Position numbers and translations under genes: made by a program
Assembly (NCBI GenBank): GCA_964187785.1
Contig: OZ076414.1
Location: forward strand, 30,690,001-30,754,000
Length of the DNA: 64,000 bases
Reading direction: 5' to 3'
DNA from: Amphiscolops sp. MND2022
Taxonomy: Eukaryota
The notes under the pieces: model-generated
Databases searched by the model: none
What the model saw: only the letters and a program-made list of their open reading frames with translations
Told to the model about the DNA's origin: nothing
Shown: positions 32,144 through 64,000 of the stretch, one piece after another
How positions within the stretch are numbered: position 1 is the stretch's first letter
How the letters are laid out: each line of letters starts with the position of its first letter

Positions 32144-32167
32144 TTAATTTTAAATAAAAACTTAATT

Positions 32168-32878: not shown

Positions 32879-32895
32879 TATTTATATAAATATAT

Positions 32896-33768: not shown

Positions 33769-33782
33769 TTATTTCCTGATAA

Positions 33783-34790: not shown

Positions 34791-34807
34791 AAAATGGGTC
34801 TGATTTC

Positions 34808-34928: not shown

Positions 34929-35007
34929 ATAAACGAAGTGTATAATTTGTGGAAAAAGTAATGAAAAATCTGTCTGCTCCGATTGTGAGAATAAAAAAAA
35001 ATGTAAA

Positions 35008-36835: not shown

Positions 36836-36884
36836 AATTTATTATTCATAAAAAATAATATTTATTTTACAGCAAGGCTGTAAA

Positions 36885-37287: not shown

Positions 37288-37344
37288 TTATTAGAAAAAA
37301 AATATTCATTTTTTTTCTAAGCAAACCTTTGGTTTGTATATATA

Positions 37345-38372: not shown

Positions 38373-38375
38373 TTA

Positions 38376-38558
38376 TTAAGAGAAAAATTGTTTATATCCA
38401 CTTGCGGATATCTTATTTATGAATTCTTGGTTTTGTTTTGATAATTTTTTTTGATTATTACCGAAGGAGCTTTGCTTATGAATATTATTGTTATCATTTT
38501 CATTCTCTGGCTTTTGAATAACTTTAAATTGAGCTGAATAATTATTAATTTTCTTCAT
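38376..38558 (-). CDS. Polinton small hypothetical protein, 60 aa
   Basis: ATG in TAAATG context; stop followed directly by TAA-ATG of the penton. Confidence 0.5.
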   Translation of the reverse strand: MKKINNYSAQFKVIQKPENENDNNNIHKQSSFGNNQKKLSKQNQEFINKISASGYKQFFS

Positions 38559-38599
38559 TTAAGAAGAAAAAATTTGTTGAATTTTTTTTCTAAGCTTGC

Positions 38600-39000
38600 T
38601 TAATTAAGTTTAAAAGTTTGATAGTATAAATTTAAAACTGCATTTTTGAAGCCTATAATTTGTGTAAGATATAACACATACAATAAGCTGCACAATAACT
38701 GTCGTCTTTCTGGATTTGATATTCTGAATAGATACCATTATTAATTTGTTTTGTTATATTTAGTGGTGGTGGACAGTCATATGAATCAAAATAAAACTCG
38801 TTAACAAACATAACCCAATGTGTTCCTTTAGTTGGATGTAAGTTAACTATACCACTGGTGGTTATAAATTTATCATCTCTCATATATATTCCACAAGATG
38901 TGTTCATGAGTTTTAAGATTTCTTTTATTTCTACATTGGAAGTTGCTTCATTTTTTAATCCATATTTATTAACAAATTCTTTGAATGATAAATAATTCAT
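38600..39000 (-). pseudogene. Adenain-like cysteine protease (PRO), frameshift just after the catalytic Cys
   Basis: GTHW (His), YFDSY (Asp), IQ....YCAAYC (Gln/Cys); the alternative frame continues VLYLTQIIGFKNAVLNLYYQ...*. Confidence 0.88.
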
Positions 39001-39020
39001 TTAATAGTTGTTTTTCATCA

Positions 39021-39190
39021 ATTTTGCTAATTTTTCAGTTGCGAAAAAAGGCTGATTTTTAGATGGTTTGCCTTGGTTATTTTTTAACAGTTAGTTGTGA
39101 AAAAAACGTTGATTTTTTTTAAAAAAAATAATCAACATTTTTTTAAAAAAAAATATTTGATTGGCCCGAATCGGGAATTCGTATACTACT
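39021..39190 (-). repeat. Polinton right TIR
   Basis: Reverse complement of the left TIR; ends ...GAATTCGTATACTACT followed by the TSD. Confidence 0.95.
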
Positions 39191-40230
39191 GACTATCGAT
39201 AGAGTGAACAAATGGCCCTGCATTAACATACTCTTTACAGATAAATATATATTTTTTCAAACACGTATGAAATGAACAAAATTTTGTCAATATTTTTGAC
39301 CATTTCGATGGTTTCGAAAATTTTCCGCAAGTTAGTAGTTTATTGGCTACGGTCGAGACTTGAAATGTGTCTTAGCTGAAATATTTCCGGTCGCAAAATA
39401 TCCCACTGCTTAGCAGGCGTCTTATTTTCTAAACAGAAAACAAAAAAGCTGATCTGGAGAAAGGAATGAGAATAAATTTTAGCAATAATATAGCTAGGTT
39501 TTTATAATTTGAAGCTCTTAGTGGCATTTCCCAAGAAAATGGGAACGGCGCAAGTCGGCGCACCGCTCAAGATTCAAAAGAGCAAAGCAGGGACACAACG
39601 CTGGAAAAGTAGAATCATCAAAAACCAAATTTTTAAAACAAACAAGTAGACACACAAAAAAACTAGTCACTGTAATAGCCGGGCTTTTTTCCTTAATGGA
39701 AAAAGCGTCGACTAAAATGATTCAAATATATTCACACTAGATTTTTAAAAATGATTCAAGCTAGCTTCAGTATTTACCCTTGCTGAACTTACCTGAACGT
39801 TTTACATGTCCTTCAAAGTTGCCAGCAACTTTTATAATTTTCTAAAAGTTTTCACGGAAATTTCCATGCGAAAATGTTCTCCTGTTGTAATCCACTACTT
39901 TTATCAAGCTGCCTAAAAACTTCATGCACCGTTTCGACGGTACTCAACAGTTTTGGTATCTATACAACGTTCCACCACTATGTGCCTGTCGGTAATTGCT
40001 TCATCACTCGGAAAAACGATGACTAGCCTGAGGACATCGCAGAACCTTGTCAAATCAGTTTTTTCCTTGAGATTGACCTCCATAAACTCTAGTGAAAATT
40101 TATGTTTTAGGGTAGTTTCCAGTAAAGTAACTCCCTGTACTTTAAGAGAAGCAATACTTTATTGTATAGACCATATGGTGACTGAGCGGATCTCAGACTT
40201 CAAGCTCTATAATTCAACCAGTACATTATT

Positions 40231-43200: not shown

Positions 43201-45150
43201 TACGATTAATATATCATCTAGAAACACGTATGTGTTTGGGATGTTTCCCAACTCTTGGTCCATGGCCCTTTGGAATTCTGTGGGCATTGTAGTGAGCCCA
43301 TAGAATCCTGTTACGAACCTGTATGTGCCGGTGGCTTTCCCACCTATAATTTGAAAATTACAGTGTTTTGATGTTTCTTCATCAAGCGGCACTTGTCCAT
43401 ACGCGTAGCGCATGTCAAGTGATGTGTTAAGTGCCTTTCCGTTTTCTTTGTTGTCTAATTGCTCTGCTACTAAGTCAACTAAATGTTCTAGGTGGGGCAT
43501 TTGGTATTTATCTTTCACAATTTCATTATTCAGTGCACGCGCGTCTAAAGCAATTTTCACACTTTAGTCTTTCTTCACTGTGATTACCACAGGTTGTATA
43601 AATTGCTTATCTGTTACTTCACTGACTCGTTCAATGTGGCCTTCATTTAATAACCTTTCGATTTCGTCTTGTACCGCCTCCTGGAGTTGGATCGGTACCC
43701 TTCTACCTTTTTGTTGTGTTATTTTGGCGTTTTGTTTAAATTCAATTTTTACTTTATGTTTGTTTATTTTGTTGGTCGTTCCAATTTTCTGGTTCATTCG
43801 CTTTGTTTGGTTTATCCAATTTAATTGGTTGTGTAGTTCCGCTTGTTATTTTACAAATAGTTCTTTTACCTTCGTTTTGATTGGGTGAGACGAAATTGTA
43901 GTTGAAGGCGTTCAGCCAGTCCCTTCCAATTAGTGATTTTGCGCCTCTTTCTGCTATCAATATTCTCGCCTTCTGCAGTTTGCTGTCTCCCACTTCCAAT
44001 TTGCAGAACACATAACCCAGTAAGTTCAATTTTCGTTTATTGAAGTCCACGTATTCTTCGTCTTCTGGTAGTTGTCGTATGAATAAAGTTTTTCTTTTCC
44101 TTATTCGTTTAATTTCTTCAATTTCGAATATTGTTACTGGTGACCCTGAGTCAACCATTGTTTTGAAAGGATTGATCCATTTTCAACTCCGTTTATTGTT
44201 AGCACAATTTTATCGTCTTCTATTGCTGATCCCGAACTACTTTCTTCGAAATTCATCTATTCTTTGGATTCTTTGCTATGGCGGTTTTGTGATTTTTCGG
44301 CTTTTTGCAAAACTACCGGCTCCTCTGGTTTGGCAACATTTTGCAAAGTGGCCCTTTTTTCCACATTTCATGCATGTAATGCCCATTGCCTTACACTCCG
44401 TTAGGTGTTGTGGGCTGAATGGAGCTTCACAACGAAAGCACTTTTTTGTCGGTCCCCACCGTTTGGTCTCTGTATTTATTTTATTGATTTCGTTTGGTTC
44501 GTGTTTAATGTTTGGTTTGTCCAGTTTATCGAATGTTTGTTGTCCCAGCGTTCCTTCTTCGTAGGCTATTGCGAATTGAATTGTGTCAGCGATTGATGTT
44601 TTGGGCTCTGTACATAATTTTTGTTGAACTTCTTTATTCATATTCACAATGAATACGTCCTTCACCAAACTTTCAGTTATTGTCCCAAAATTGCACTTCG
44701 CCGCCAGTCTGTTAAGTTCGTTCCAGAACTGCTTTAGCGTTTCGTTTTCGTTTTGTTTTCTGCTCAGGAACTTGAATCTGTCCAGCGTTTCATTTTTTGG
44801 TTTTTCGAAGCAGTCTTTGCATTTTTGTAGTAGTTCGACCAAAATGATTGTAGCGATATTCGTTGTCGGGAATTTATCTGAAATCGTCTTCCTTGCTGCC
44901 ATTCCTGGGGCTAGGTAGAGTACGCTGTTAGCTTTCTTCATTGCTGTTGCCTCTTCCATGTCTCCCATGAGGCTTTTTTCTTTTGTACCTGTAGTTTTGA
45001 TATGTTCTGCTACAGAGATGTTTCTTTTAGCCATAAGGGCTACTTCAAATAGGTCTCTCCACTTTTCCCATTCTAATTCAGGGGTTTTTGTTGCTTCTTG
45101 CCAAAAAAATTGCTCCGTATCTTGCCATCGAAATATCTAATCGATCTTCC
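40231..45150 (-). mobile_element. Degenerate Ty3/Gypsy LTR retrotransposon (element A), 5' LTR not found
   Basis: gag with two Cys/His knuckles, protease DSGS, RT (FLDD), RNase H (CDAS..GLGAVL), integrase (DFAGP, TDPG, KVERLIRT); PPT GAAACGAAGGAGGAG (40355-40341) then TGTGACA; boundaries approximate. Confidence 0.88.
40461..45130 (-). pseudogene. Gypsy A gag-pol, multiply frameshifted
   Basis: ORF fragments 44276-45034, 43754-44158, 43564-43797, 42850-43560, 41979-42965, 41034-41279, 40461-41027 in gag-PR-RT-RH-INT order. Confidence 0.88.
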
Positions 45151-46089: not shown

Positions 46090-46295
46090 TGTTAACGACT
46101 ACGACTCAAGTAAAGAAGAATATGATAGCGACTGTAAATTCGACGGTATTGCATTTTATGGCAATAGATGTTATTTTGCCACTTTGGCATAATTTGGCAG
46201 GTTGTTAATATGTTACGTAATAAAGTATTTCACACTATTGTTTTTCTCACATTAGCTTTAGGTTATGTAATGTTAGTTGTCTAGCACCTACCACA
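46090..46295 (-). repeat. Gypsy B 3' LTR, 206 bp
   Basis: Matches 51280-51493 except three substitutions and one net 8-bp complex indel; preceded on the minus strand by purine tract GAGGGAAG (46303-46296). Confidence 0.95.
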
Positions 46296-46597
46296 CTTCC
46301 CTCGGTATTAATGAAGGTCATGGGGTTTTGTACATTTGTACTTTATTTACGTTTACATTAACATCGTTATGTGATTGGTCCGTCTTTTGGCCAATACTTT
46401 TACAGAATGCTAATTTTTTCATGGTATATAATTGTCAACTAAAAACACAATTAAACAACTGCGAACAAATGTTACTACAACACCAGTTCTTTTAAAACTC
46501 AAACTGCGTGCTGGGTTCATGAATAAATATAACTAGGCCGCACTTTTATCAAGGTTTTCAGCAATGCTCGATGAGTTTTTTTTTTTAGTTTTTGCTT

Positions 46598-49500
46598 CTA
46601 CTGAGGAGGAGGTATTTCATATACTCTGGGTAAACTTTCTCCAACGCTGGCTTCCTGCTCAATCTTTTTGACAATTATGTTATTTCTTAGCCAATCAGGC
46701 TTTTTCTGGGTTCTCATTGAGCTTCTTTGTGCTACTTTCTCCCACTTTATCTGTCCCTTCACGCGTACTTTCTTTTCTTTGTTCTTTTCCTCCTGTTTTT
46801 CTTTTTCTTCTTCTTCCATACTTTCTGTTGTTTTCATTTCTTTCTCCTCATTTGCCGGTATTGTTGATTCGTCTGCGCTATTTGCTTCAGCGCTTTCTTC
46901 TTGTGGTTCTGGTTGTTCATTACGTTCTTCCTTTTCTCCGCCCTCGTTTGACGAGAGTCTGCCTCGATAATATTTTTTTTCTGCCATTTCTTCCCAGACT
47001 GGCTTTTTCTTTGCAGATGCCACTTTTTGCATCTTTGCCTTCTTTGATTTTATTGGCCTTGGTGCGCTCGTGCTGGCTCCTTCATTATGCCTCAGTGCGC
47101 TTGTGCTGGCTCCTTCGTTCACTTTAGCCACATCTCGCTTTGACAGTATTATTGGTTTTCCGGCTTTCGGCTGAACTGTGATGGTGTGCTCACTTTCAGC
47201 GGTCACCCTTCCTTTCATCTTTTTGAAGTTTTCTTCGAGTTTTGTCCCTCTCACACGTTCTCTTACGAGAATAGTTGAGTCGGCTTCTTCGCTGAAGTCC
47301 TCGGGTTCGATCTGGAGCTTTGGGTCTTCTTCTAAAATACACTTTTTTATCATAGCAGATTTTAATGTATTTGGTGTTCTACCCATTTGCTTTTCGAATG
47401 CTGATTTGTTGTCCGCTCCTTTTTCCGATGTTAGCGCAAATAATATGTTTGATATTCCCGTTGTGTCCCTTTGGACAATTATGTTTCTATTTGTTCTAAT
47501 CCTTTCGTTCACCGTTCGAATCATTCTCTCAACTTTCCCATTTCCTCTATGATCACGTCTTGGGCATACTATATGCTGAATAAATTTTTCTCTACAAAAT
47601 GCTTTGAGTTTATCCCCCGTAAACACTGTTCCCGGGTCCGTCCGTATTCTTTTCGGAATTCCATTTTTGGCAATGTACTCTAACAAAAATTCGATTACCT
47701 TTTCAGCCGTTGGGTTTGGTAAAAACATTGCATCCGGCCAACCTGAATTATTATCAACCGAGACCAACAAATACTTTTTCTGTTTTCTTGCATTTTGAAA
47801 TGGGCCGGCAAAATCTATGGATATTTCGTCATTAGGCTGATTCGCTTCCGGTATTTTTCCAAAATCTTTTTGACTCTTTAGACATTTAAGATTCTTACCT
47901 GCATTTTGGCATTCCACGCAATTTTCCGCTTTTTCTATGATCTCTCTATGGATTCTTGGCCACCATACATCTGACGCTTCCCGTAGCATCGCATTTCTCC
48001 CTGCGTGACCGAAATGGATAGCACGTAAAACATTCTCTCTCATGTCTTTAGGAATCACTAATCTCTGATCCATGTAAAGTAAGTCTTGTGAATCTAAGCT
48101 AAATGATGAGAATTTTTCCCTCCACGGGGGCGGTAGTCGAGCAATTACGGACGAATTTTTATCTTTTAGTAAGCGGATATTTTTTTGAATGTTCTTGTCG
48201 TTTTCGTAATTGGCCTTCACGTAAACTTGGCTGATTTTTGAATTGACTAGATCATTCGCCATTCCTGCGTTAATTGGCTTATCGTTTATTTGTTCACAAT
48301 TTACGCTCGACTGCGTAGGCTGGTGAATTGTTAGCCCACTCTTATTTGCCAATTTCGTTCTTTCAAAACATTCCTCGCTTCTGATTGGTTCATTTTCTTT
48401 TGCTGACTTTCTATTTAATGTTGGGACGGTTTCTTTCACCACATTTATCGTAAACCAATTATTAAATAATTCTTCCGCTTTTAGAATTGAACCATTATAC
48501 TCGGAAGGGCGGCGTGACAATTAATCTGCTAAACCTAAGGTTCTGCCAGGTTCGTGCACCACATTAAAATCGAAGGGAAGGAGTCTATCCACCCACCTTG
48601 TGAGTCTACTTGAACACGATTTGTTTCCTTTATTCGACTTCAGAACGCTCTGTAACGCCTTGTGGTCTGACACTACTCGAAATTTATCCCGTACACGTAA
48701 TTTTTAAAATGTTCCACTGACCAGACTACAGCTAGTAACTCTAATTCATTTATTGAATATTTTGCTTCTAAATCAGTTAAAAATCTTGACGCGTATGAGA
48801 TTGGTTTCCACCGTTCCTTTTCTTTTTGCTGAAGTACCGCGCCTAATCCTTGTTTGCTGGCATCGCAGATTATTCTCAATTCTTTGTTTCTTTTAAAAGG
48901 CGTTAATTCCGCGACTTTTTTTTTACTTCTTTGTTGACTCTTCTGAATGCTTTTTCATGTTCTTCATTCCATTCCCATTTGGCTTCCTTTTTTAAAATTG
49001 AACGAAATGGAAAGCAAATTGTAGCCAAATCTGGGACAAATCTATTGAATTGATTCACTGCGCCTGAGAACGATCTTAGTTCTTTCAAATTCGTTGGTCT
49101 GAGTTTTTCTGTAATTCCTTGTACTTTCGAATTTATTGGCGAAATGCCTGATTTTGTCAACTTGAACCCTAACCACTCGATTTCTTGTTTAGCAAATTCG
49201 CATTTTCCCGCCTTTAATTGTAGTTCTGCTTCATCTAGCACTTTAAAAATTTCCCGCACTTTGTTCAAATGTTCAGCTTTGTTTTTCTTGGTTACAATTA
49301 AAATATCATCGATAAAGACAAACACTTCTCTAAATTTTGCTAATACCAAATCCATTACTTTTTGAAATTCTGTCGGCATAACAGTTAGACCATAAAAACC
49401 TGTTACAAACCGATACGTTCCCGTCGATTCTCCGCCGATAATTTGAAAATTACAGTGTTTCGCTGTTAGCAAATGTAGTGGAATTTGACCGTATGCGTAT

Positions 49501-51280
49501 GTCATATCAACCGATGAATACCATGCCTCACCTTCTTCATTATCTAGCTTTTCAGCTACCATGTCTAACAAGTTATCAAGGTTCGGCATTTGGTATTTAT
49601 CTTTATCAATGGCTTGATTTAGCGTTCTTGCATCCAGCGCGTTTTTTACCGAACAGTCTTTCTTCACTGTTATTACTGTTGGCTGTATAAATACGTCGTC
49701 CTTGACTCCGTTACTTTTTTCTATATGGCCTTCTTTTAGTAATCGTTTTATTTCCGCATCTACCGCGTTTTGTAGTTGAATTGGGATTCTTCTCCCTTTT
49801 TGTTGCGTAATTTTTGCATCCGGTTCTAGCTTTATTTTGATTTCGTGATCTTTTATCTTCCCGTTTCTTTTGAACAGTTTTGGAAATTCGTTACAAACTT
49901 GCTTGGTTTCCGTACTTAGTTCTTCTTCTTTTTCAATTGAATTAACTTCACACTCACCTTTGTTAGCTGGGGCAATTGTATATTTCAACGTTGACAACCA
50001 TTCTCTGCCGATGATCGATTTTGTACCACTCTTTGTGACTAGGATTCTCGCCTTTTTAATATATTGATCCCCCACTTGTAATTCACAGAAAACGTATCCC
50101 AGCAACTTCAACGGCTTCCCGTTGAAATCCACGTATCGCTCGCCTTTAATCATCTGGCGCACTTGTATTTTTTCTCTTTGCATGATCTGTTTAATCTCAT
50201 CTAGCGCGAAAATGGTTACTGGCGACCCTGAGTCGATCATTGTTTTGAAGCGATTCCCATTAATAAACCCTTCCATATAATACGGTTTAATGTTTTCATT
50301 TTGGCCATCTACGTTCAAAACCATGAAATTATCGTCATCCTCTTCTTCTTCCTGATCGACCAATCGGACGCGGCTGTTTATTTGTTCACTACTGCCACTT
50401 GCTCTGAATCTATCACTTTGCTGTAAATTATCCTTTTTCTTTTGATTACGAACTTTCTCCAAGTGGCCTTTTCTGCCGCAGTAATTACATGTCGCATTTG
50501 GTCCTTTGCAGAATTTTAAATGGTCCATTGTAAAATTACCGGCACCGCATCTCCAACATTCTTTTGTATTCTGTCGGTTACCACTTATTGTACAAACTGG
50601 TTCTTCTTTAATTTTCGTCTCATTTCCAATGTAGCCGTATGTTCTCTGTCTTTTCAATCCGTCTTCAAATGCAATGGCGAATTGTAGTGCCTCTGCCGGG
50701 GTCTCTTTCGGCTCCGTGCACAGCTTTTCTGCACCTGCTTATTCGCCATATTCAGTACAAACACGTCGTACACCAAACCTTCTGTTTGATTACCAAAGTC
50801 ACATTTGGCTGCTAATCCATTGAGGACGTTCCAGTACTCGTGTAGTGATTCCGATGGCTTCTGTTTTCGCGACAATAAGGTATGTCTGTCCATCGTATTG
50901 TTTCGACGTATTTGGAAACACTCGTTACAATATTGGCGAAATTGTTGTAGTTGGATCAGTAGGATATTAATCTGGGGGAACTTATCCATTAGCATTTTTC
51001 TGCCGGTTTTTCCCAATGATATGTACAGTAAACTGATTACTTTTCTTGCTGCAGGGGCTTCCTCCATGTTTCCCATCAGTGCTTGGGCCCGGGGTTGCTG
51101 TTCTGCATTTCTTGTCAATTCGGAGACGGAAATTGAGTGACGGGCCAACACTGCTACCTCGAATAGTTGCAGCCATTGGTCCCAGTCGTACGAAGGGGAT
51201 TTTTTGGCATCTTGCCAGAAATAACTCAGTCCAGGGACTGGGGCATTTGATTGATCCTCATCAGCTGCTCGCAGCGCCAT
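46598..51280 (-). pseudogene. Gypsy B gag-pol (probably a single ORF originally), three frameshifts
   Basis: Knuckles CWRC/CNYC..KGH, IDSGS, FIDD, CDAS, HxxH...CxxC, DFAGP/TDPG/VERMIRT; shifts near 50720, 48910 and 48530. Confidence 0.92.
51265..51279 (-). promoter_or_regulatory. Gypsy B primer-binding site, tRNA-Ser-like
   Basis: TGGCGCTGCGAGCAG immediately after the 5' LTR; complementary to a CTGCTCGCAGCG-CCA 3' end of the kind found in animal tRNA-Ser(CGA/TGA). Confidence 0.75.
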
Positions 51281-51493
51281 GTTAACGACTACGATTCTGG
51301 AGTGGAAGTAAAGAAGAATATGATAGCAACTGTAAATTCGACGGTATTGCATTTTATGGCAATAGATGTTATTTTGCCACTTTGGCATAATTTGGCTGGT
51401 TGTTAATATGTTACGTAATAAAGTATTTCACACTATTGTTTTTCTCACAATAGCTTTAGGTTATGTAATGTTAGTTGTCTAGCACCTACCACA
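51280..51493 (-). repeat. Gypsy B 5' LTR, 214 bp
   Basis: TG...CA, adjacent to PBS and TSD. Confidence 0.95.
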
Positions 51494-51657
51494 GTTATTT
51501 TCCGACTCCTTATTTTATAAATGGGGGAAGAAAATCATGATCTGTGACGGTTTTTTCCGAATTTTGCCAAATCTCCACAATCTCCACCTTTTGATTACTT
51601 GACTATTTTATATAGCTACTTGTAACTAATATAGTCAAGTAACTAAAATAGCATACA

Positions 51658-51800: not shown

Positions 51801-52492
51801 TCCCAAAATAGCTATGACTCAGTTAGTGAAGGCGAACAGGGCGGAAAGTATCCCGGTGCTTAGCGGGCGTCTTGTTTAGCTTGTTCACTGTCATTTTGGT
51901 TATCAGCACATTGTTTAGGTTTTTTTTTCATGGCGTGGATCAGTTTTTGTCTGATTTCACATTGAAGTTTGTTTTAATATTTGAATTCTTGTTCGATATT
52001 TAATTCTGATGATGTGTTCGTGATTATTTATAGGCCACTAAAACTCTGCGTCTATCGTTGATAGATCTGCATCCGTCTTAATGAAGATCGGAACGGAGAG
52101 CGCGGTCCGTTTTTCGGTTTCCTCTGGCAGGTTTTTCTGGCTAACTGTTTTCTCATTGTCATTTTAAATTGAGACTGACTGCCATTTTGTAATCAGCCGA
52201 TGTTTTACGAATGAGTTACAATAACAAGAGTGACTACAAAGAGTGTATTCAAACCCAATATTTTCATCTTAAGTGACAAAAATACCTCAAGCTTGCTACA
52301 GTATCTAACTAATCCAATTGCTCAATAATGAGGAAGTCTATACACCGATCTTACGTTCGACGGGTCTTAATCAACAGTCTGAGTTTTGATCTTTTTTGCA
52401 CAAATGTAATTTCCTGAATTGCTTTTGTTTCAAATTTTGCTTAGCAAGCAGAACGTTTCTGCAAATCAGAAAGCAACATGGTGGCTGAAACG

Positions 52493-52746
52493 TGTTGAAG
52501 CTACAAAAATACGTTTCCAATTTTAAACAATGATGATTTCGAGCATGTTAATCATATTTCATATACACGTCAGCTTTCAAATTGAATCATGAATTGTTCA
52601 CGTTTATGCTATTACTCACTTTTTTTGTTGTTGATTAAATCAATTCAGCTGCTTCTGAATAGAAAACATTTCAGTTCTAAAAAGATTGTTTTGATAATAA
52701 TCTCTTGCTCTCCCGCAACAAAATCAAGCTATCAACATAAACAACA
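52493..52746 (+). repeat. BEL/Pao 5' LTR
   Basis: TGTTGAAG...AACAACA, matches 60427-60679. Confidence 0.97.
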
Positions 52747-52785: not shown

Positions 52786-55700
52786 ATGTCGTCAACCTAC
52801 GAGAGGAAGACGCTTGAACAGTTGAAACGTTCCCGCTCAGCAATTCTTGGTGTGACCACCAAATTAGAAACCAAGCTTAGACCCTATTTGGATAAAGCTA
52901 AAGAATATATTACGGCTGATGACCTCAGCTATCTTCGTACAATTGAAAGACAATTGGAAAAAAGATTCGAAGATGCAGGCGCTCTAAATTCTGCAGCATT
53001 AGAACGTACTACAGATACAGATTCAGATCTTGAAAAGGAAATTGAAGACGCTGAAGATTTCGAGAACAAAATCGGAACACAACTTGAACGAATTAGCAGC
53101 TTTTTGGATCAATTTGAAGTTTCTGATTCTGCTGTGGCAGCTGCAATCAATGCATCACCTACATCCAGCTCTTCTACAACAGGAAATTTGAAAATGCCCA
53201 ATTTTGATCTTCCGAAATTCAAAGGTCACTACAAAGACTGGACTCCATTTTACGAACAGTTCATGGCTTCAGTGGATAGCAGCACAACAATTGCAGATAT
53301 TCAGAAGTTCAACTTTCTCAAAGCAGCTCTCAGTGGTGAAGCTCTACAATTAGTTTCGCACTTGCCATTATCTAACTCCAATTACAAAATTGCTTTGAAA
53401 TCCTTGATGGACCGTTACGATAACGAGCGACTGACAGTCAATTCCCATTTAGACGCAATACTTCAGTTGCAGCCTTTGAGTGGTGAGTCAGCTTCACAAC
53501 TTCGACAACTTCTCGTAAGTTTTGAAGAAAATTTAATGGCAATTGAAGCGCTTAAAGTAAACACGAAAAATAGTGACTTCATTTGGGTACGAATTTTATC
53601 CGAGAAGCTAGATCAGGAATCTAGACGCCAGTGGGAACTAGACTATCCTGGAAAAAAGTTGCAAACACTTCAGCAATTGCGAGATTTCATAAACAAACGT
53701 GTTCAAGCTTTAGAGGCTTCAAGTTCAGTTACAACCACTCGTAAAGTTAATCAATCTACCAATTACAACAAATTCGGAAGAAATCAAAAGATTGAACGAA
53801 GATTTCTCAAAACTACAAGACTACATCTGAAAGATGTCATTGCTGTTCAGAAAACCACAAAATCTTTGCTTGCAAGAAGTTCGCTTCACTCAACATTAAA
53901 GACAGAAAAAATCTAGTCTATTCGTCCAAACTATGTTTCAATTGTTTATGCCATGGGCACTTACCGAAAGACTGCAAATCGAAACATACTTGCAAAAAGT
54001 GTCAAGGTAAACATAATTCAATACTTCACACAGATTCATCTCAAATTGGGGAAGTTTCAGGATCAGTTATAGCGAACCAAGCACTTACCTTTTCGGCTTC
54101 TGGCATCATACCAACAGCTTTGGTACCAATTGAGGATGATTCCTCCAATATAACGATTTGCCGAGCTTTGATTGACAGTGGCTCCCAGCTCAGTTTAATT
54201 TCTGAATCAGCAGTGCAACGAATGCATTTAAAACGACAGAAACGATCACTTACAGTTAACGGTATTGGGAATGTTTCTAAAACCTATAACTCGGGAAGTG
54301 TAAATCTGTGTCTCAAACCAAAGAATGGAATGAAAGTCATAAAATCCATGCATTTATTCTTCCTAGCCTTACACAACTCCTACCAAATCGCTCATTTGAC
54401 GTTGTATCACAGTTTCACATGCGAACTGTTGAATTAGCGGATCCTTCTTTTAATGTCTCCAGTGCAATAGAATTAATCTTGGGATCAGATGTAGCAGAAG
54501 AGATCATTTTAGACGGAAAATTCACGGAAACCAATGGATTGCATTTCCGTAACACAGTTTTCGGTTGGATTGTTTCAGGAAAGCAACCGAATCAAAGTTG
54601 CACAATTGCAAATACTTCACTCTGTATCAATGACAATTTTGATCTGAAAAAATTTTGGGAATTGGAAGAAGTACCAATCGCCAATAAGAATACTGCTGAA
54701 GAAATAGCTTGTGAAAAACATTACCAAGAAACTACCATTGTGCAAAACAACAGATTTGTTGTCGGAATGCCGTTCAAGTCTGATGCTACACCTTTAGGTG
54801 ATACTTTCGTCCAGGCTAAAAGAAGACTTCTTTATTTGGAGAAGCGTCTTGAAGCCAATCCTGCTTTGAAGAAAAGTTATTCAGGTTTCATTCATGAGTT
54901 CCAAGACTTGAATCATCTTGAAGCAGTACCGAACGAGGAACTCGTCAAAAAAGACTCTGACGTGAACTTCTTACCTCATCATTGCGTACACAAAGAAGAT
55001 TCCACCACGACTAAACTTCGAGTTGTATTCGATGGATCAGCGAAATCGAGTACTGGTGTTTCACTGAATGGATCTCTAATGGTAGGACCAACAGTCCAAG
55101 AAGATTTGTTTTCCATCCTCATCAGATTTCGTCTCCATAGAGTAGCGCTTTCAGCAGACATTGCTAAAATGTATCGACAAATTGCTCTCGAATCAGTTGC
55201 AAAGGATTTTCACCGCATTCTTTGGCGAGATTCAATCACAGATTCAATACAGCAGTATCGAATGACTAGAGTGACGTATGGAATAGCATCATCAGCTTTT
55301 CACTCCACACGTTCAGTAATAGAAGTTGGTAATCGCTGTAGTGATGACTTGCTCGCAAAAACTATCAAGCACGATTTCTACGTTGATGACTACCTTTCTG
55401 GTGCAAACTCTGTCGAAGAAGCAAAAATCAAAGTTACAAAAATTTATGAAAAACTCAAAGAGTATGGATTTGAACTTCGCAAGTGGTCGTCTAGTCATCA
55501 TGAAATCACCTCTTCATTGCCTGAAAATTTGCGAGAAAATCCAGACAAAGAGAAAGTCATGGACGAAAACTACAAAATCAAGACCTTGGGTGTGTCTTGG
55601 AAACCTAATTCTGATTCTTTTCAGTTCTACTCGAGTGTTTGTTCGAATGACAAAATCACAAAGCGTAAACTACTCTCAGAAACAGCCAAGCTTTTCGATC

Positions 55701-57985
55701 CAGTTGGTTGGCTAGCACCAGTAGTAATCAAATTCAAAGTAACTTTGCAGAAACTTTGGATTCAAGGAGTGGGATGGGATGATGTACTTCCAACAGAGCT
55801 TCAAAACGAGTGGATAGAAATCCAGTCCGATTTGAACAATTTGATCAGTTTACAGTTACCACGGTGCATTGTTCCAACTGAGAAAAGTGACAAGGTTCAA
55901 CTACATTTGTTTACAGACGCTTCCGAAGTAGCCTTTGCCGCAGTTATTTACATACGAATAACAGACTCTTCGGGAAAAATTTTCACTAACTTGGTTTCCT
56001 GCAAAACACGAGTTGCTCCCATTAAAACAATTTCGGTACCACGTCTCGAGTTGTGTGGAGCACATCTTGGAATCAAACTTCTAACAAAAATTAAGGACAT
56101 ACTGGAACTGTCTATTTTGCCTCAGCCTGAAATATATGGTTGGACCGACTCTAGGATTGTGTTACAGTGGTTAGCACAACTTCCACGAACATGGACAAGT
56201 TTTGTTGCCAATCGTATATCCGAAATTCAACAAATTTTGCCTCGGGCAAACTGGAATCATGTCAAGTCAAATTCCAATCCGGCTGATTGTGCATCACGCG
56301 GGACTCTTGTCAAAGACCTCATAGACACAAGTTTTTGGTGGCACGGTCCTGATTGGCTCTCTCAACCCGAAAGCACCTGGCCACAGCCTTCTTCAACGGT
56401 GAATGAAGATAACAAGCAACAGATCGAGTCGGAGAAAAAACACAAAAGATGCGAGACTGTTGCAAGTGCAGTTATTGCAACTCAGCCCTGGATAGACATC
56501 AGCCGTTACAGTAGCCTCTCGAAACTTCAACGCATCATAGCGACGATCATCAAGGCTTCTCATCTCTTCAAAGATGCCTCCAAAGGAGTTTCAGTTACAC
56601 CTCAACTTTTAAACCAAGCAAAACTCATTCTTTTGAGACAACATCAAGCACAGTATTACGCCACAGACTTGGCAATATTAACGACAGGCAAAGAATTACC
56701 TCGCAACAGCAAAATTCTAAATCTCTCTCCTTTTTCCGACGAAGACACTGGAACCATACGGGTTGGCGGTCGTTCAGCACAAAGTCAGATACATCACGAT
56801 CAGAAGTTTCCCTATCTTGTCCATTCTGACTCACATCTGGCCATTCTCATTCTTCGCTATTATCATGAAGCTACCCTTCATGGCGGGGGGCAGCTGACGC
56901 TCAGCAGCAGATCAGAATATTGGATTCCCAGAGGCAAGAACATTTGCAACAGAGTCATCAAAAACTGTGTTAAGTGCAGTAGATTCAATGGTGATGTACC
57001 TGTGCAGATAATGGAAGACTTGCCCAGTGAACGTTTGGATGCTGGTACTCCTTTCATAAACACTGGTGTTGACTTTGCCGGACCTATTGTGACGAAACCT
57101 AACTGCAAAAACTACATAGCAATTTTTGTTTGTTTTGCTACGAAGGCAGTTCACATAGAATTGGTGACGGATTTGTCCAAAGATTCCTGTATACTGGCTT
57201 TAAAACGATTCATATCCAGACGTGGATTGCCGGAGAAACTATTTAGCGACAATGGATCGAACTTCATTGGAGCTAGAAATGATTTGATGAAAGTCAGAGC
57301 CATTCTCAGCAAGGATTCGGGCGGCAATTCTGTCACAGACTTCGTCATTCAAAAAGGCATTCAATGGGTGACAATACCTCCTCGTGCACCTCATTTTGGA
57401 GGCCTCTGGGAAGCAGCTGTGAAGTCCATGAAGCGACATCTGAGACGAAGTGTTGGTACCCAGATTCTGTCATTCGAAGAACTCAATACATACCTCATCC
57501 AAATCGAGGCGATTCTGAATTCTCGGCCAATCACTTCGATGTCAAATGACCCAAACGATTTGAGACCACTCACGCCTGCTCATTTTCTTCTGGGAAGATC
57601 AATGAATGACATACCGGAGTCGAACCACAGTGTTGACGATGACAATCTTCACATTAAAACGAGACATCGATTGCTTGAGAAGATGAAGTTTTCTTTCTGG
57701 AAATCGTGGCATCGCGACTATCTGGTCACCCTGCAAATACGCAAAAAATGGCTTTCCAATGGACCAACATTTGCAGTTGGAGACCTGGTTTTGATTGCAG
57801 AGGATAATCAACGACCTTTACAATGGAAACTAGGCAGAATCACCGAGTTGTACTCAGGAAATGACAGTGTCAATCGTGTTGCCAAAGTAATCACGGATGC
57901 AGGAATGTTAGTACGACCTGTTGTTAAGCTTCGTAAGCTTCCCGTTGATCCTTTATTGCCAGCAAATCACTCGCAGCTCATTTAG
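52786..57985 (+). pseudogene. BEL/Pao gag-pol polyprotein, two frameshifts
   Basis: LPKFKG.Y.DW..F...F gag region, three Cys/His knuckles, ALIDSGSQ, LPHH..HKEDSTTTKLRVVFDGS, FYVDD, FTDAS, DFAGP/FSDNG/LWEAAVKS; shifts near 53800 and 54320; 54308-57985 open for 1225 aa. Confidence 0.93.
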
Positions 57986-59129
57986 AAAGAAAAACATTTT
58001 GTCAAAAAAATTTATTTTTTTTGGAACTCGAAAACTCTGACGATTTTGGGATGACAAAACTAATGCCAAAAATTGATGACCCATGGCTTCGACCTATAAA
58101 ATACACCAATCGCTTCGGGGATGTTGCCTCCATAACGCCTTGGAAGCAGAATTTCCAATATCGCCCCTAAAGTGCGAAAAAATCATCTTACCCTGATAGT
58201 GTCTGTTCTTACACTTGTTAACTTCAAGATTTTCGTTACTTTCTTGGTCACAATCCCCTGATTACTTCTGGATCTCTTAGCCCTTGTTTGCATACATTCC
58301 AGGGCTAGCCTAGAGCAATTATGAATCCATTGAAACTACAATTTGAGAATTTCTCCCTTATTTTATTGATTTACACTCATTTTCCACAACTTTGTTTTTG
58401 AATGCCGACTGTCTTTCCAGTGCCAAAACTTAGTGACGCTAGCGAAATCAGCCTATGGATATTCAAGAGGGCCAAAACAGCTCTGTTATCAACGCCTTGG
58501 AGTTACAATTTCAATTTACTGCGAAAATATTCATTTTTCTTTATTTTTGTTGAAAATTCTCACATCTAGTTGGTTCAATTGATGTGATGTTTTTCTAGTG
58601 CCAAAATACGCTCGACACTACACCAGCCGTATAGAAGGGTTTATTCGACTCCTAATACTCTTGCCTACAACTTCTTGGAGCGGGATTTCGCTTTTTGTCA
58701 TTTATTTTATTTTATTGACAAATAAACATACTCGAATTCACCACAGATTTAGCTGATAAATTATATAAACAGAGGAGATACAGAAACAAAACTAATCAAC
58801 AGAGAACCAGTTACAAACCTCACTCATTGGCATTTTCTGTTGTTCTGTTCAAATGGGGCAACAGTCAGCTCGGGCTCAGAGATTACCTCAAGAAATTTGA
58901 TGATAAGATTTGAAGATTTTCGTCATTTTTCAAGTATTTCTCAATTTTACACAAAGTGTTTGTCGCATGAATCGGCAAACAACCCCTGGATACGTGATTT
59001 ACGATACTCCTATCAACAATTTGTATGCATTATATTATCTCTGGAATGTAACAGAAATTGTGGTATCTTGCATCAGTTGGCGAAACTTTCACTGAGTACG
59101 GAGAGCTCAAAGACCCTTGGGAAGACAGA

Positions 59130-60377
59130 CTAAGGATACTCCAGGAGTTCTACTTCGCTCAATGGAGTCAAATTTGGAGCATTCATCGCATCCTTAGCAG
59201 CCTTCCCAAAGTTAGCTAATCGTCTGTTCTTTTTACGAGATTTGTAATGATTTCGTGGATTGCTACGACGAAGAAACTTATTCAAATCGTAGCCAACAGC
59301 TTGAAAGGCCTCACAATGTTCCAAAACATCGCGCCGATAAAGGAAAGACCACACAGTTGACTCTTCACTATCGACTGAACAAACCAGTGGATTCTCAAGC
59401 CTAAGGAACTGAGCAGCCTTCCATTGTTTCAAAGCAACTCTCCATTCCCTAACCTCAAGAAGTTTCACCAGCTGATCCAACCCATAGCGATCAAGCCACT
59501 GCCTGATGAAACCTTTACCAGCGCCACTGCTGAACTGTCCAAAAACACGATTAGCTCTTTCTTGATCGTTACCATTAATACCCTCCCAGCCATGCACAAG
59601 AGCCCATCGGACGGTCCCATCTGTATTCAAAGAACGCCCAGTGAGTACACAATGAGCATAGCAAGGAGGTTGAATGATGACGTCTCCGGGCTCAGCCAAG
59701 TGATACCGCAAATCCCGTATCAACTTTCGTTCTCTCCTGCTGTATAACGTTTTTGGCTCAAATAATAGTCTGTACAAATGATTGAAAAATTGTACGCTCA
59801 TAAGGAACTGAGAAGAGGCAATAGTGGACGCAAAAATCCAAATCTTGCGACCGGATTCCAATTTCGCTATACTTTCACTTCCTCCCCATTCAATATGAGC
59901 ACAAGTGAACCAAGGGCCTTTGGTAGCTAAAAGAGCCTTGGAACGAATTTTAATGTATTCCGGAGCGAGACAACTGATAAACTTGTCGGGCAGTTCAAAG
60001 GAAAACGTCAAGCAGCCCTTGAAGCCAGGATTATCAGTGCCTACACTCCAACGATGAACAGTGGCTTTTGCTGCTGCCTTGAACGAGGAAAACAATGTTG
60101 CGCCCTCGTTCCACGCTAACTTTGCCTTCCCAGTCAAATTACAGAGGTTGTTTGCCTCAGGACCCCGAACAACAAGTGGCTGCATTGGGAAACTACCCAC
60201 CCAGTTGATCACAGAAACAACTAGAATAGGAAGAATCCCCCTCCTCCTCCACGGCAGACCACCTTGCTGCTCAGCAATCCTGAAAATACTCTCAACTTTT
60301 TCTTCATTTTCGATCATGCTACTATGAGGTAACTCCTCGCCTCCGCCTCCTTCAACCCCTGAACATTCTACATTCAT
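59130..60377 (-). CDS. JmjC-domain 2-oxoglutarate/Fe(II) dioxygenase-like protein (KDM2/KDM7-like core), antisense inside BEL/Pao
   Basis: FTCAHIEWGGS...GRKIWIFA and EPGDVIIQPPCYAHCVLT align by eye with PHF8/KDM7 YTDFHIDFGGT...GEKIFYLI and KQGQTLFIPTGWIHAVLT; T158, H161, E163, K178, H242 present; intact, intronless, 415 aa. Confidence 0.8.
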   Translation of the reverse strand: MNVECSGVEGGGGEELPHSSMIENEEKVESIFRIAEQQGGLPWRRRGILPILVVSVINWVGSFPMQPLVVRGPEANNLCNLTGKAKLAWNEGATLFSSFKAAAKATVHRWSVGTDNPGFKGCLTFSFELPDKFISCLAPEYIKIRSKALLATKGPWFTCAHIEWGGSESIAKLESGRKIWIFASTIASSQFLMSVQFFNHLYRLLFEPKTLYSRRERKLIRDLRYHLAEPGDVIIQPPCYAHCVLTGRSLNTDGTVRWALVHGWEGINGNDQERANRVFGQFSSGAGKGFIRQWLDRYGLDQLVKLLEVREWRVALKQWKAAQFLRLENPLVCSVDSEESTVWSFLYRRDVLEHCEAFQAVGYDLNKFLRRSNPRNHYKSRKKNRRLANFGKAAKDAMNAPNLTPLSEVELLEYP

Positions 60378-60426
60378 TTCTGAAAATATTAAAGCATCTG
60401 ACGCAGATCCTTCAAGGCGGGCGGAA

Positions 60427-60679
60427 TGTTGAAGCTACAAAAATACGTTTCCAATTTTAAAAAATGATGATTTCGAGCATGTTAATCATAGTTCATATAC
60501 ACGTCAGCTTTCAAATTGAATCATGAATTGTTCACGTTTATGCTATTACTCACTTTTTTGTTGTTGATTAAATCAATTCAGCTGCTTCTGAATAGAAAAC
60601 ATTTCAGTTCTAAAAAGATTGTTTTGATAATAATCTCTTGCTCTCCCGCAACAAAATCAAGCTATCAACATAAACAACA
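60427..60679 (+). repeat. BEL/Pao 3' LTR
   Basis: Matches the 5' LTR; followed by the TSD. Confidence 0.97.
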
Positions 60680-60807
60680 AAACGATCAAAACACTTTGAT
60701 TGGAATCCCAACTGCAACCCATTTTGGTGTTGCCGGTAGGCTAAAAACTTGACTGGAAAAGCCTAACTGGCAACGTACGGTGCATCTATCATAAGGCACA
60801 CTTTGAA

Positions 60808-61078
60808 TGTAGACACTTTCTCGATATTTATTGCTCTCTTCAATACTAGACACTCACTGTTGTATCTCGAACAGACGTATAAGAAAAAGAATTCAAAATT
60901 TAATTTCAACTGTCCTGTTACTATCCTTTTTCTATCTGTTCGTACAAAGTTTCATCTGCACTTATGTGGCAGGGCAGGTATTTAATCTATAAATAACACG
61001 ATAAACAGTATAAATAAACAAAGAAGAAGGCAGACAAATTAGTTTCTAGAGTCTAAATGAGTTCGTCTGTCCTCTACA
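60808..61078 (-). repeat. Gypsy D 3' LTR, 271 bp
   Basis: TGTAGA...TCTACA terminal inverted hexamer, directly next to the PPT; partner LTR not in the window. Confidence 0.75.
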
Positions 61079-64000
61079 TTCCCCGATCCACTATTGGCTG
61101 GTGATCGGCCAATGGAGGCGTTCTGCTTTCTGTTGTGGCGGTCAGTCCTCCACTGGTCCCGTGTTTGAAGGACGGTTAACCGTCCCTGGCAGTTTGATCT
61201 GTTCCGGTATGCAATGGCCGTAACGTCTGAACTTGGTTCTTTGACCGGTCTAAGGTTGTCGTCTTTCCTCTCCGGTTGAGCTTCTGGTTGACTTGGTGTG
61301 GCCTCCGAGTTCAGTCTTTCTACGGTGTTTCCTGTAACCATGACAAACAGTTTTATTATATCTAACGATTGGGTTAGTTTTTGTCAACCTCTTTGATCTG
61401 AGTATAGTTTCCTTTTCTTCAGAGTCAATTTCAGTACTTGAGCTCAGGTTACTTGCTACGGCTAGATAAGAATTTTGTAGGTTGTCTTCTAGTGTGTTCG
61501 AATAAGTGTTATTATCAGTAAATACCTAACTGTTCTCATCTCGGATAAAAAATTCCAGGTCTGCGCATTTAGCGTCTTCTATAGCACAGTCTCTTTCCGT
61601 GGCCGTCATATTTGTTGCTTTAATGGTCAATGGGCTGGTCCGTGCTGCTTCCCGGCATAGGTGTGTTGGTTGGTGTTTGTGGGGAGTTCGGGCTGGTACG
61701 ATCTTTGACTAGCTTTGGTCCACCTCGTCCGAACGTACTCTTTCTGAGGGGCGTGTTGTCGAGAGGTTCTGGCATCTTTGGACTCTCTGTGTCCATTAAT
61801 GGCGTCTCTGATCCGCTGTCCGATTCTATCACCATTGCCCATTTTTGTTTGGATGGTGATATTATAAATCGGCCGTCCGGTCCGCGTGGCCCGATCCCTC
61901 TGTTGCTTTTTTCTTGATTTAAATCAGAGATAGGTTTACGTATCACTTTCCTTATGTAATACTCTTCTGTTTGGAGTCGTGCCCGATATTGCTAATTGTG
62001 GTTTATCGCAATGCTTTTTCAAATTTGTTTCCTTTGTGTTTTTTCTGTAAAAATAAAAAAAGATAAAAACTAACTTCTTTTGTGTTTTTTCTCGGCTTTG
62101 ATAGCAGCTGGTCAGACACATCGCTAGCTCCACATAATCAAAATACCTGTAAGGTATCTGGTATCGCTGAAACGTAACATTTTCTTAACTTTTCGATTTC
62201 ATCAAGGTTTAGAAAGTGGCTTATCTCCGTATTTGGTTTTCTGCCATAGTGGAGTTCAGAAGCGCATTTTTGTGGTCGTGTGTGAGGTGTTTTTCTCATT
62301 ACGTCCAGTGACATATCCAGGGCCCTACCGAAACGTTCTCCGGCTTTAATGTTTGTTAAAAGGTTTTCTTTCAGAGTTCTGAGCCCCCGTTCTACCAAGC
62401 CGGTGGGTGTATGGATATACGATGGCCCGTATTATAATTTGCTGTAGTGGTTTTTGCAGAAGTCTCTGAACAGACGTCCCGTGAAAGCGGTAGCTTTATC
62501 CGTTCTAATTGTTTTTGGTATACCACTTAGCTGGATGTATTGTTCAAGAAATTTTACCGCCGCCTCGCTGTCCGTAGATGTACAAAAGCTTACCGCCTGC
62601 CAATTACTGATCCCGTCCATGGATAATTTCATTTAAAATTCGTGAATCCAGGGCATTTTTTACCGACTTGTCCTTCTTTACCGTATTTGCAGCCGGACTG
62701 ACGAAACAGTTTTTGTCAATGTTGTTTGCTTTTTCAATGTGGTCTTGTTTCATGAGTTCATCGACTTCTTTTCCGAACGATTGTTGTAAGTGGATCGGTA
62801 TTGATCTTCCTTTTTGCTGTATTAATTTTACGTTTTCCTTTAGCTGTATTTTCACTTCGAGTCCGTTCACGGTGTGATTCTCGTTGAAAAGTTTTTTGAA
62901 TTTTCTTTTTAGGATTGTTATGTTCTGATCTTCCGTTATGTGATTCATCTGTGGATCGGTCTTACTTGTATCCAGCGTTATTCCCATTTTCTCTCTCCAG
63001 TCCAAACCTAATAAAATGTTGGTTCTCTTTGTTGTTACCAGGACTTCGAGGTTGTTTCGCTTCCCGTCTATTTCTACTGTTGCGATTGTCTTTCCTTCGA
63101 ATCTAATCCGATTGACCTTTACATCTCTATATTCGGTTTCATTTGGCTTCAGTAGCGTTATTCTGTTGAATTGTGATTTCGGTATCAAGGTTACCGGTGA
63201 GCCGCTATTTATTATAAATTTGATTGATCGGTTATTGACCAATGCTGTAAGAGTGTAGAATTCCGGACCATCCTTTTTCATTGGCGTGTTGAATGAATCT
63301 TTTGATTTACTGAATGGTTTTTTGTAATTTCCTGTATGCGGTTTACTCTTTTGTTAGTTCTACAACATTTCGCGTAGTTGCCGAACTTTTCGCTTTTCGA
63401 ACATTTCTTTCTTCTAGCTGGGCATTCGTGCTGTCAAGACCAGTTAGGTGCTCCGCATTTAATGAAGTATATTATTTGAATTTAGCAGGTTTATCCAATG
63501 GTTCTTTCGTACTTCTTGTCTTTCTTCTATTGAGATATTTTCTTCTCATCTTCTGTTTCTAGTGAGTCGTTCAATCTCCCATACATGTACTCGTGTAGTG
63601 CTTCGGTAATTGCCTCCATTGACACGTTGCTTTTTCTGAATTTTTTCTTGAGGTCATAATCGCCAGTCGATTTTACAATTACAGAAAAATATATTGAAGC
63701 CACAAGTTCCGCTGCGGTTATTGTTTCGAATTCGCAGTTTCTCTCGACTTCTAATATCCGTTTCCAGACGTCTCCCGCGGACTCGTCATCTACTCGTTTC
63801 AGGTCGAAGAAATCGCCTCTGCTGTGTTGAACGTTTCTCTCCGGTGTGAAATGTAGTCGGAATTATGTGTATAATTTGTATAACGGTAGTTAGCTTGGCT
63901 CTCTCTCTCTAACCGTTTTGATCATTTACGTGATAGCACTTTGTCCAATTGCCCACAAAAATATGTCTTGTATCTCTGTTTCTAATTGATCGCGGTATTG
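60808..64000 (-). mobile_element. Internally deleted Ty3/Gypsy (element D), 5' end probably beyond the window
   Basis: 3' LTR, PPT GATCGGGGAA (61088-61079), integrase remnants (TDKATAF, VERGLRTLKE), protease remnant FIINSGS, gag remnants; RT/RNase H missing. Confidence 0.85.

Follow-up and report, generated by a model that had tools for sequence, protein, structure and literature searches.

An antisense gene for a predicted JmjC-fold oxygenase in BEL/Pao retrotransposons: a candidate histone demethylase that may counter silencing

We analyzed a 64,000-nt stretch of the genome of Amphiscolops sp. MND2022 (contig OZ076414.1 of GenBank assembly GCA_964187785.1, positions 30,690,001 to 30,754,000 of the forward strand), and by "the window" we mean this entire stretch. 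Near the right end of the window lies an 8.2-kb long terminal repeat (LTR) retrotransposon of the BEL/Pao type. Antisense to the element's own genes, between pol and the 3' LTR, is an intronless open reading frame (ORF) of 415 codons, not counting the stop, with ATG as its start codon (Table 1). We predict that this ORF encodes a JmjC-fold oxygenase that depends on Fe(II) and 2-oxoglutarate (2OG), and we found related ORFs in several other families of mobile elements. The enzyme might be a histone demethylase that helps the element to escape from silencing, which is a more tentative part of our account.

The identity of the carrier element is clear. According to Pfam, its sense strand encodes a gag protein with DUF1759 and a pol protein with RVT_1, Peptidase_A17, Integrase_H2C2, and DUF5641. 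Each LTR has TG at its start and CA at its end, and the element is bordered by a perfect target-site duplication of 5 bp (AAACG). This set of domains, the LTR ends, and the short duplication make it a BEL/Pao retrotransposon, and such elements are known from metazoans. There is only one pair of target-site duplications, and it encloses the entire element. The two LTRs differ by just two mismatches and one single-base indel, so they are about 99% identical and the insertion must be young. All of this agrees with an earlier interpretation of the DNA that was made without any database searches (the sequence-only reading), which had described the antisense ORF, its placement between the pol stop and the 3' LTR, the near-identical LTRs, and the perfect duplication.

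The same reading had contrasted the intact ORF with a gag-pol that contains two frameshifts. There are indeed two frame changes: if we use tblastn to align the window to the intact 1736-aa polyprotein of a related element (locus L001, see below), then gag-pol is spread over three reading frames, and the aligned pieces cover 1700 of the 1736 residues and contain no in-frame stop. The contrast itself is less telling than it seemed. One of the two frame changes may be natural, as gag and pol are also in different frames in L012, which is the closest relative from another assembly. Furthermore, an ORF that is intact in one young insertion is weak evidence by itself.

The noncoding parts of the element around the ORF are short. 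From the pol stop to the stop of the antisense ORF is 1.14 kb of sequence that is collinear with two sibling copies of the element (L013 and L007), and this spacer probably holds the 3' untranslated region of the antisense gene. Its minus strand contains seven A[AT]TAAA motifs, and such matches to the poly(A) signal are uninformative on their own. On the other side of the ORF, the spacer beside the LTR is purine-rich on the plus strand, and it is at the position of a polypurine tract. There are no tandem repeats in 57900-60700.

The 415-codon ORF is not a chance ORF, because a word-indexed search found 12 relatives with E values from 2e-229 to 8e-45. An exhaustive phmmer scan of 1.84 billion representative sequences gave 100 relatives at E ≤ 1e-3. 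The sources that were shown for these relatives are all metagenome-type assemblies from ENA or Logan assemblies, and none are from NCBI or UniRef. Across look-ups of homologues, profiles, and clusters, none of the relatives has a name, and among those with precomputed Pfam results, none has a Pfam domain. Similarly, word-indexed profile searches returned no relative that was named, annotated by Pfam, or present in NCBI or UniRef, and pattern scans based on the family alignment found no relative in JGI metagenome contigs or in IMG/VR. Since Pfam does not see this JmjC-like family and no named protein belongs to it, it is being overlooked in annotation.

Short contigs hold most of the 100 relatives, and we know the genomic context of the family at 15 loci, which come from five assemblies or runs. 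(By "the window's assembly" we mean ENA assembly ERZ25074608, in which the window's contig is ctg185903.) The most similar carriers are the two siblings of the window's element, which are at other loci. L013 aligns to the window's element from LTR to LTR, with 91.6% identity over 8209 columns, and carries the ORF, broken by a frame change, beside a decayed pol. L007 is about 95% identical to the window's element and also carries the ORF. Given that the siblings and more distant families have the ORF, a later and independent insertion into the window's copy is excluded. As an aside, within L007 (13722-21068), a 1589-bp segment of pol from the Pao peptidase region has been tandemly amplified at least five times, with 91-100% identity.

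A second BEL/Pao family has an ORF that is 52% identical to the window's. It is represented by four loci (L001-L004), and at each of these the ORF lies tail-to-tail about 1.4 kb downstream of gag-pol. At L001, the ORF is enclosed by LTRs that are 100% identical. This family must have spread very recently, because there is at most 1 nt of difference between its coding sequences and the 1736-aa polyprotein of one copy is uninterrupted. Two more BEL/Pao families carry the ORF: L006, from the window's assembly, with 47% identity, and L012, from assembly ERZ1742291, with 66-69% identity. The contig for L012 (1-8759) has low coverage and looks like a circular permutation. One end of this contig has the C-terminal end of the ORF, and the other end has the N-terminal 297 residues, which come after gag and the expected position of the LTR. 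Beyond the N-terminal part is a fragment of a D-galactarate dehydratase/altronate hydrolase, so this contig may be chimeric.

More distant members of the family (19-33% identity) lie antisense and tail-to-tail behind a pol of the Ty3/gypsy type, which contains RVT_1, RT_RNaseH, Integrase_H2C2, and rve and lacks the Pao peptidase. L009 and L010 are from the window's assembly, and L011 is from assembly ERZ17099311. The elements at L009 and L010 are 13-14 kb long, with 100% identical LTRs, and in each the antisense ORF is flanked by pol and by a third ORF in the sense orientation. The third ORF, which is the next one toward the 3' LTR (L009:6556-9168, 870 aa; L010:6986-9091, 701 aa), has no match in Pfam and may be env-like.

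Some members of the family lie beside other kinds of genes. At L015 (from a Logan run), a family member faces an ORF that contains rve. At L014, a family member overlaps tail-to-tail with a 1446-aa protein, and a gene for an adenovirus-type protease is nearby. The 1446-aa protein is homologous (E = 2e-40) to a polymerase-like ORF in an AT-rich element elsewhere in the window, and the context of L014 is Polinton/Maverick-like. At L005 (3305-11681, assembly ERZ25071359), the family's gene P0012 is followed by a 179-bp satellite array with over 46 copies, so the type of element around P0012 is not visible. In a neighbor-joining tree, the ORFs that are carried by BEL/Pao elements form one clade, those that are carried by gypsy-type elements fall into two or more groups, and the member on the Polinton side stands apart. 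So far, we have met this family only inside or beside mobile elements. The sequence-only reading had proposed that the gene was captured from a processed host gene, and no donor was found. That the gene is present in two superfamilies of retrotransposons and next to a Polinton-like neighbor suggests that it is useful enough to have been acquired repeatedly, which is a hallmark of an arms race between host and element.

We also noticed that two unrelated families of carriers have short tandem duplications past the stop codon of the antisense ORF (L001:11930-12273 and L009:11225-11564). The units are about 157-183 bp and are 83-90% identical, and they are absent from the window's copy. A small ORF on the sense strand (131-210 aa, with no match in Pfam) overlaps this region in L001-L004.

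The ORF is under purifying selection. We used the method of Nei and Gojobori on codon alignments to estimate the rates of synonymous and nonsynonymous divergence (dS and dN). Between the window and L007, dS is 0.14 and dN is 0.039, which gives a dN/dS of 0.28 (Fisher p = 1e-6), rather than a ratio near 1. Between the window and the decayed sibling L013, dN/dS is 0.45-0.55, a range that would be expected if some of the divergence came from neutral decay. The four copies of the 52% family are at most 1 nt apart and are uninformative. For most pairs from different families, dS is saturated, so we instead compared the proportions of nonsynonymous and synonymous sites that differ (pN and pS), and we compared pN for the ORF to pN for gag and pol. 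Between the window and L012, the ORF has pN = 0.21 and pS = 0.70, which is near saturation (p = 6e-37), while pN is 0.19 for gag and 0.18 for the longest single-frame piece of pol. Between the window and the 52% family, dN is 0.43 for the ORF and 0.27 for pol. Overall, the ORF is about as constrained as gag and pol in the close pair, and it is somewhat less constrained than pol across families.

The predicted structure of the protein is that of a JmjC enzyme. From an alignment of the family, AlphaFold2 gave a model of the 415-aa protein with a predicted local distance difference test score (pLDDT) of 89.8 and a predicted template modeling score (pTM) of 0.87. The model consists of one JmjC core plus helices, and neither it nor Pfam shows a PHD, CXXC, or F-box/LRR reader or a targeting domain, so the sequence-only reading was right that reader domains are absent. 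When we compared the model to the PDB with Foldseek, there were 422 matches at E ≤ 1e-3, and the top 50 were all JmjC enzymes, many of them with a probability of 1.00. The best match was TYW5, a tRNA hydroxylase; others in the top 50 include ceKDM7A, FIH, KDM5B/KDM5C, PHF2, KDM7A, and JMJD5, with E values of about 3e-8 to 4e-7. A gypsy-borne relative that is just 22% identical was also modeled confidently (pLDDT = 88.1), and it matched KDM7A, TYW5, ceKDM7A, FIH, JMJD5, KDM2A, PHF8, and PHF2. Matches to viral structures were weaker and involved cupin/JmjC proteins from giant viruses and AlkB domains from plant viruses.

A comparison of sequence profiles is narrower. The family profile matched only six distinct sequences in the PDB: ceKDM7A from C. 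elegans (E = 0.025), four constructs of PHF8 (E = 0.57-0.82), and PHF2 (E = 0.92). In these alignments, the threonine, the HxE/D motif, the lysine, and the second histidine are in register with those of ceKDM7A and PHF8. (When the single sequence was compared to the PDB, the sole match was ATP synthase gamma, with E = 1.2, which is a chance hit.) The sequence leans towards the KDM2/KDM7 group, while the fold does not separate the demethylases from the hydroxylases.

The residues that would bind the metal and the co-substrate are nearly invariant. In an alignment of 32 sequences with a mean column identity of 21%, the near-invariant positions are H161, E163, S169, G176, K178, Q236, P237, H242, V244, T246, G263, and E265. 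We then counted over every family member that we had collected, or about 95 relatives. The metal triad of H161, E163, and H242 is retained in 92-97% of them: H161 is kept in 86 of 93, E163 in 87 of 92 (with aspartate in 2 more), and H242 in 95 of 98. As for the other two positions, K178 is kept in 84 of 92 and T158 in 81 of 93, with serine in 9 more. These are the same five residues that the sequence-only reading had picked out as the iron- and 2OG-binding set. Given the model and this complete set of cofactor-binding residues, the protein is predicted to be a JmjC-fold Fe(II)/2OG oxygenase.

That reading had also pointed to a basic stretch near the C terminus as a potential nuclear localization signal. 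The stretch is present and is conserved as a basic motif: within the C-terminal 50 residues (59130-59300), near residue 380, BEL- and gypsy-borne members have in common a motif with two lysines, an arginine, an asparagine, and a hydrophobic residue. The motif is followed by a short acidic and hydrophobic tail that is packed on the catalytic domain in the AlphaFold model (pLDDT of about 95). The motif and the tail could serve in localization, in interactions, or in autoregulation.

The rest of the window contains other mobile elements. The block at 24000-40000 is AT-rich (26-29% GC), has intact ORFs, and looks like an integrated element of the Polinton/Maverick type (Table 1). Separated from the BEL/Pao element by about 1 kb, on the minus strand at 46108-51496, is another LTR element, with 191-nt LTRs that are 98% identical. 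One of its ORFs has RVT_1 and an aspartyl protease and another has Integrase_H2C2 and rve, so it is Ty3/gypsy-like, and there are older fragments of related elements at 41979-43560 (repeats with 70-73% identity). Just past the 3' LTR of the BEL/Pao element, a 225-aa ORF on the minus strand (62604-63281) matches retroviral-type aspartyl proteases, so it is a fragment of a retroelement. The ORFs in 5034-19574 and 61039-61946 include no host gene that Pfam can recognize. The window contains a single copy of the JmjC-like gene, with none in its gypsy-type or Polinton-like elements.

Table 1. Features of the BEL/Pao element and of the AT-rich block in the window.
Feature	Position	Strand	Basis
Target-site duplication, left copy (AAACG)	52488-52492		Sequence read; identical to 60680-60684
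5' LTR, 254 nt, TG..CA	52493-52746	+	Direct repeat with 60427-60679
BEL/Pao gag-pol, broken, two frame changes	52786-57985	+	Pfam domains; tblastn against L001
Noncoding spacer, pol stop to antisense ORF stop	57986-59129		Longest ORF ≤97 aa
Antisense accessory ORF, 415 aa, predicted JmjC-fold Fe(II)/2OG oxygenase	59130-60377	-	Homologues, profile, model
Spacer of 49 nt, ORF ATG to inner edge of 3' LTR	60378-60426		Sequence read
3' LTR, 253 nt	60427-60679	+	Direct repeat with 52493-52746
Target-site duplication, right copy (AAACG)	60680-60684		Sequence read
Polymerase-like protein with Endonuclease_7 motif	26050-27993	+	ORF of AT-rich block
Double-jelly-roll capsid domain	30592-31554	-	ORF of AT-rich block
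rve integrase	32896-33768	-	ORF of AT-rich block
Pox_A32-like packaging ATPase	33783-34790	+	ORF of AT-rich block

What might an oxygenase do for a retrotransposon? We propose that the antisense ORF is an accessory gene, not a passenger. It would have a separate mRNA, driven by a promoter in or near the 3' LTR, as has been reported for the antisense ORF of the plant element Grande (PMC7264820). Any antisense transcript must start in the 49-nt spacer or in the LTR. The product would be a stand-alone and catalytically competent oxygenase, which would enter the nucleus by means of its conserved basic motif. There, like its nearest relatives by structure and profile (KDM7/PHF8), it would strip histones of repressive methyl-lysine marks. 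By acting on the copies of the element, or more broadly, the enzyme would counter silencing by the host's chromatin and would keep the element transcribed.

Our confidence varies greatly between the parts of this proposal. We are highly confident in the fold, the residues for binding the metal and the co-substrate, the purifying selection, and the conserved association with mobile elements of three kinds, namely several BEL/Pao families, Ty3/gypsy-type elements, and a Polinton-like element. There are precedents for mobile elements that carry epigenetic enzymes (PMC12730594, PMC9289625), and it is plausible that the predicted enzyme has histone-demethylase or anti-silencing activity. The proposal as a whole, with a true accessory gene whose product acts in the nucleus as a histone demethylase and counters chromatin silencing, is tentative, and we would give it slightly less than an even chance. 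A bolder version is that active JmjC histone demethylases that are specific to mobile elements are swapped among BEL/Pao, Ty3/gypsy, and Polinton-like elements and erase marks of the H3K9 or H3K27 type (methylation of lysine 9 or 27 of histone H3) in an animal genome. This would be the first histone demethylase to be encoded by a transposable element, and we view it as possible yet doubtful.

Several observations weigh against the demethylase proposal. First, Pfam's JmjC family (PF02373) does not match the 415-aa protein, and neither does any other Pfam family at E ≤ 0.1. Even among 32 relatives, just two have a sub-threshold match to JmjC, with a best E value of 9.7e-4. The sequence-only reading's claim for a JmjC core is supported by the fold, the residues, and the profile matches to KDM7, PHF8, and PHF2, and not by Pfam's model. 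Second, the E values of those profile matches are marginal. Nevertheless, they carry some weight because they all belong to one subfamily and the catalytic residues are aligned. Third, the TM-scores of the fold matches are modest (0.3-0.5, and up to 0.48 for the window's protein), and the hydroxylases TYW5, FIH, and JMJD5 fit as well as the demethylases do, so the fold search leaves the class of substrate undivided. Fourth, hydroxylation of proteins or RNA is often the activity of JmjC proteins that stand alone and lack reader domains. Fifth, we found no promoter for the antisense gene, and there is no match to a TATA box on the minus strand of 60378-60700. Finally, RNA silencing could be fed by an antisense transcript that overlaps the genomic RNA.

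These points lead to the strongest alternative, which is that the gene and the class of enzyme are as we propose, and the protein is a JmjC hydroxylase that aids replication. Its target could be a host protein (such as a restriction, translation, or splicing factor), a protein of the element, or a base in RNA or tRNA. Besides the lack of a chromatin reader and the usual activity of stand-alone JmjC proteins, this idea draws on the fold matches, as TYW5 is the top match for the window's protein and FIH and JMJD5 are among the best for both models. On the other hand, profile matches in the PDB are to KDM7, PHF8, and PHF2 only, the motif around the second histidine aligns with theirs, and KDM7A, KDM2A, and PHF8 are among the top matches of the second model. 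We consider a hydroxylase to be somewhat unlikely.

A role without catalysis seems improbable. The protein might be a scaffold or decoy that opposes heterochromatin, as has been reported for Epe1, a putative demethylase of fission yeast with a non-enzymatic role against silencing (PMC7192584). So JmjC proteins of this kind exist, and the conserved basic motif and the confidently modeled C-terminal tail could be surfaces for interactions. But it is hard to square a non-catalytic role with the retention of the Fe/2OG residues in 91-97% of relatives, despite a mean column identity of about 20%.

It is very unlikely that the antisense transcript is the functional unit, through self-regulation by double-stranded RNA or small RNAs, with the protein being incidental. 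The position and orientation of the ORF do match the aORF-3R class of antisense ORFs in plants, for which a role as antisense RNA was proposed (PMC7264820). However, synonymous changes far outnumber nonsynonymous changes, the catalytic residues are conserved, and relatives with about 20% identity still have the same fold, so we argue that the protein is selected, and not the antisense RNA alone. Least likely of all, to the point that we give it almost no credence, is that the ORF is a passenger that does nothing for the element (either a host gene from a single transduction event or an independent insertion): retroelements can transduce host sequences, and nothing further speaks for it, whereas sibling copies at other loci are collinear with the window's element from LTR to LTR, the ORF occurs in diverged BEL/Pao families across three assemblies and within the LTRs of L001, gypsy-type carriers hold it well inside their LTRs, a single pair of target-site duplications surrounds the whole element, and purifying selection together with conserved catalytic residues rules out a neutral passenger.

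If the demethylase proposal is correct, it matters for how we think about transposons and their hosts. Hosts silence transposons largely by methylating histones and DNA. Few counter-measures that are encoded by the elements themselves are known: VANC from the VANDAL elements of plants, TET/JBP proteins from DNA transposons of fungi, and an AlkB RNA demethylase from gypsy elements of orchids. A JmjC enzyme on LTR retrotransposons would add histone methylation as another layer. Also, antisense accessory ORFs, whose role in plants has not been assigned, would gain their first identifiable enzymatic fold.

How does this family compare to known proteins and systems? Like KDM7/PHF8/PHF2 and KDM2, the predicted protein combines the JmjC double-stranded beta-helix with a helical region after it, with the triad, the lysine, the threonine, and the motif of the second histidine in register. 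In contrast to our ORF, with which they have about 12-15% identity, these proteins have PHD, CXXC, F-box, or other reader domains. Furthermore, they are host genes, while our family is encoded by mobile elements, has only a predicted activity, and is not recognized by Pfam's JmjC model. TYW5, FIH, and JMJD5 resemble our protein in standing alone and in size, and their folds match equally well. But they have no match to the family among sequence profiles in the PDB, and they are housekeeping or regulatory enzymes of the host that are not borne by elements.

Our limited search of the literature on JmjC or demethylase genes with retrotransposons, LTR elements, or Polintons/Mavericks found no element-borne JmjC gene, which is not proof that none has been described; it does agree with the sequence-only reading, which knew of no combination of BEL/Pao and JmjC. 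A list from 2025 of epigenetic enzymes that are borne by mobile elements includes SET methyltransferases and VANC and no JmjC gene (PMC12730594).

The most similar roles are in other kinds of elements. DNA transposons of fungi (Kyakuja-Dileera-Zisupton and others) have captured TET/JBP dioxygenases and have moved them between lineages, and it was proposed that these enzymes allow escape from silencing (PMC12730594). As in our family, an Fe/2OG dioxygenase that could erase an epigenetic mark is an accessory gene in several unrelated lineages of transposons. But the TET/JBP enzymes act on DNA bases and are carried by DNA transposons in fungi, and those authors found none in retrotransposons (PMC12730594), whereas our carriers are LTR retrotransposons, probably in an animal. 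For these enzymes, as for VANC, the likeness to our ORF rests on analogy. In orchids, Ty3/gypsy elements carry an ORF for an AlkB-type demethylase of N6-methyladenosine (m6A) in RNA (PMC9289625). This is another case of an LTR retrotransposon whose extra ORF encodes a methyl-removing 2OG-dependent oxygenase, although the enzyme is of the AlkB type and not a JmjC protein, it acts on RNA, and the elements are giant and are from one lineage of plants.

Two other systems resemble ours in their arrangement. In the plant elements Grande, RIRE2, and Retand, an antisense ORF (aORF-3R) lies between pol and the 3' LTR in most copies; nuclear localization was reported for one of these proteins, and transcription from its own promoter was reported for Grande (PMC7264820). 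These proteins do not resemble any known family (PMC7264820), while in our case the fold can be identified. In the retroelements of bdelloid rotifers, the same types of accessory ORF3 are common to unrelated classes (PMC5408684), so there too, different lineages of retroelements have acquired an enzymatic accessory ORF in a modular way. But those ORFs encode GDSL esterases or DEDDy exonucleases in the sense orientation, with no JmjC protein among them. So the role is a familiar one, in that mobile elements are known to carry accessory genes for 2OG dioxygenases or for modifiers of chromatin. What is new is the family of enzymes, and the range of its carriers is unusually broad.

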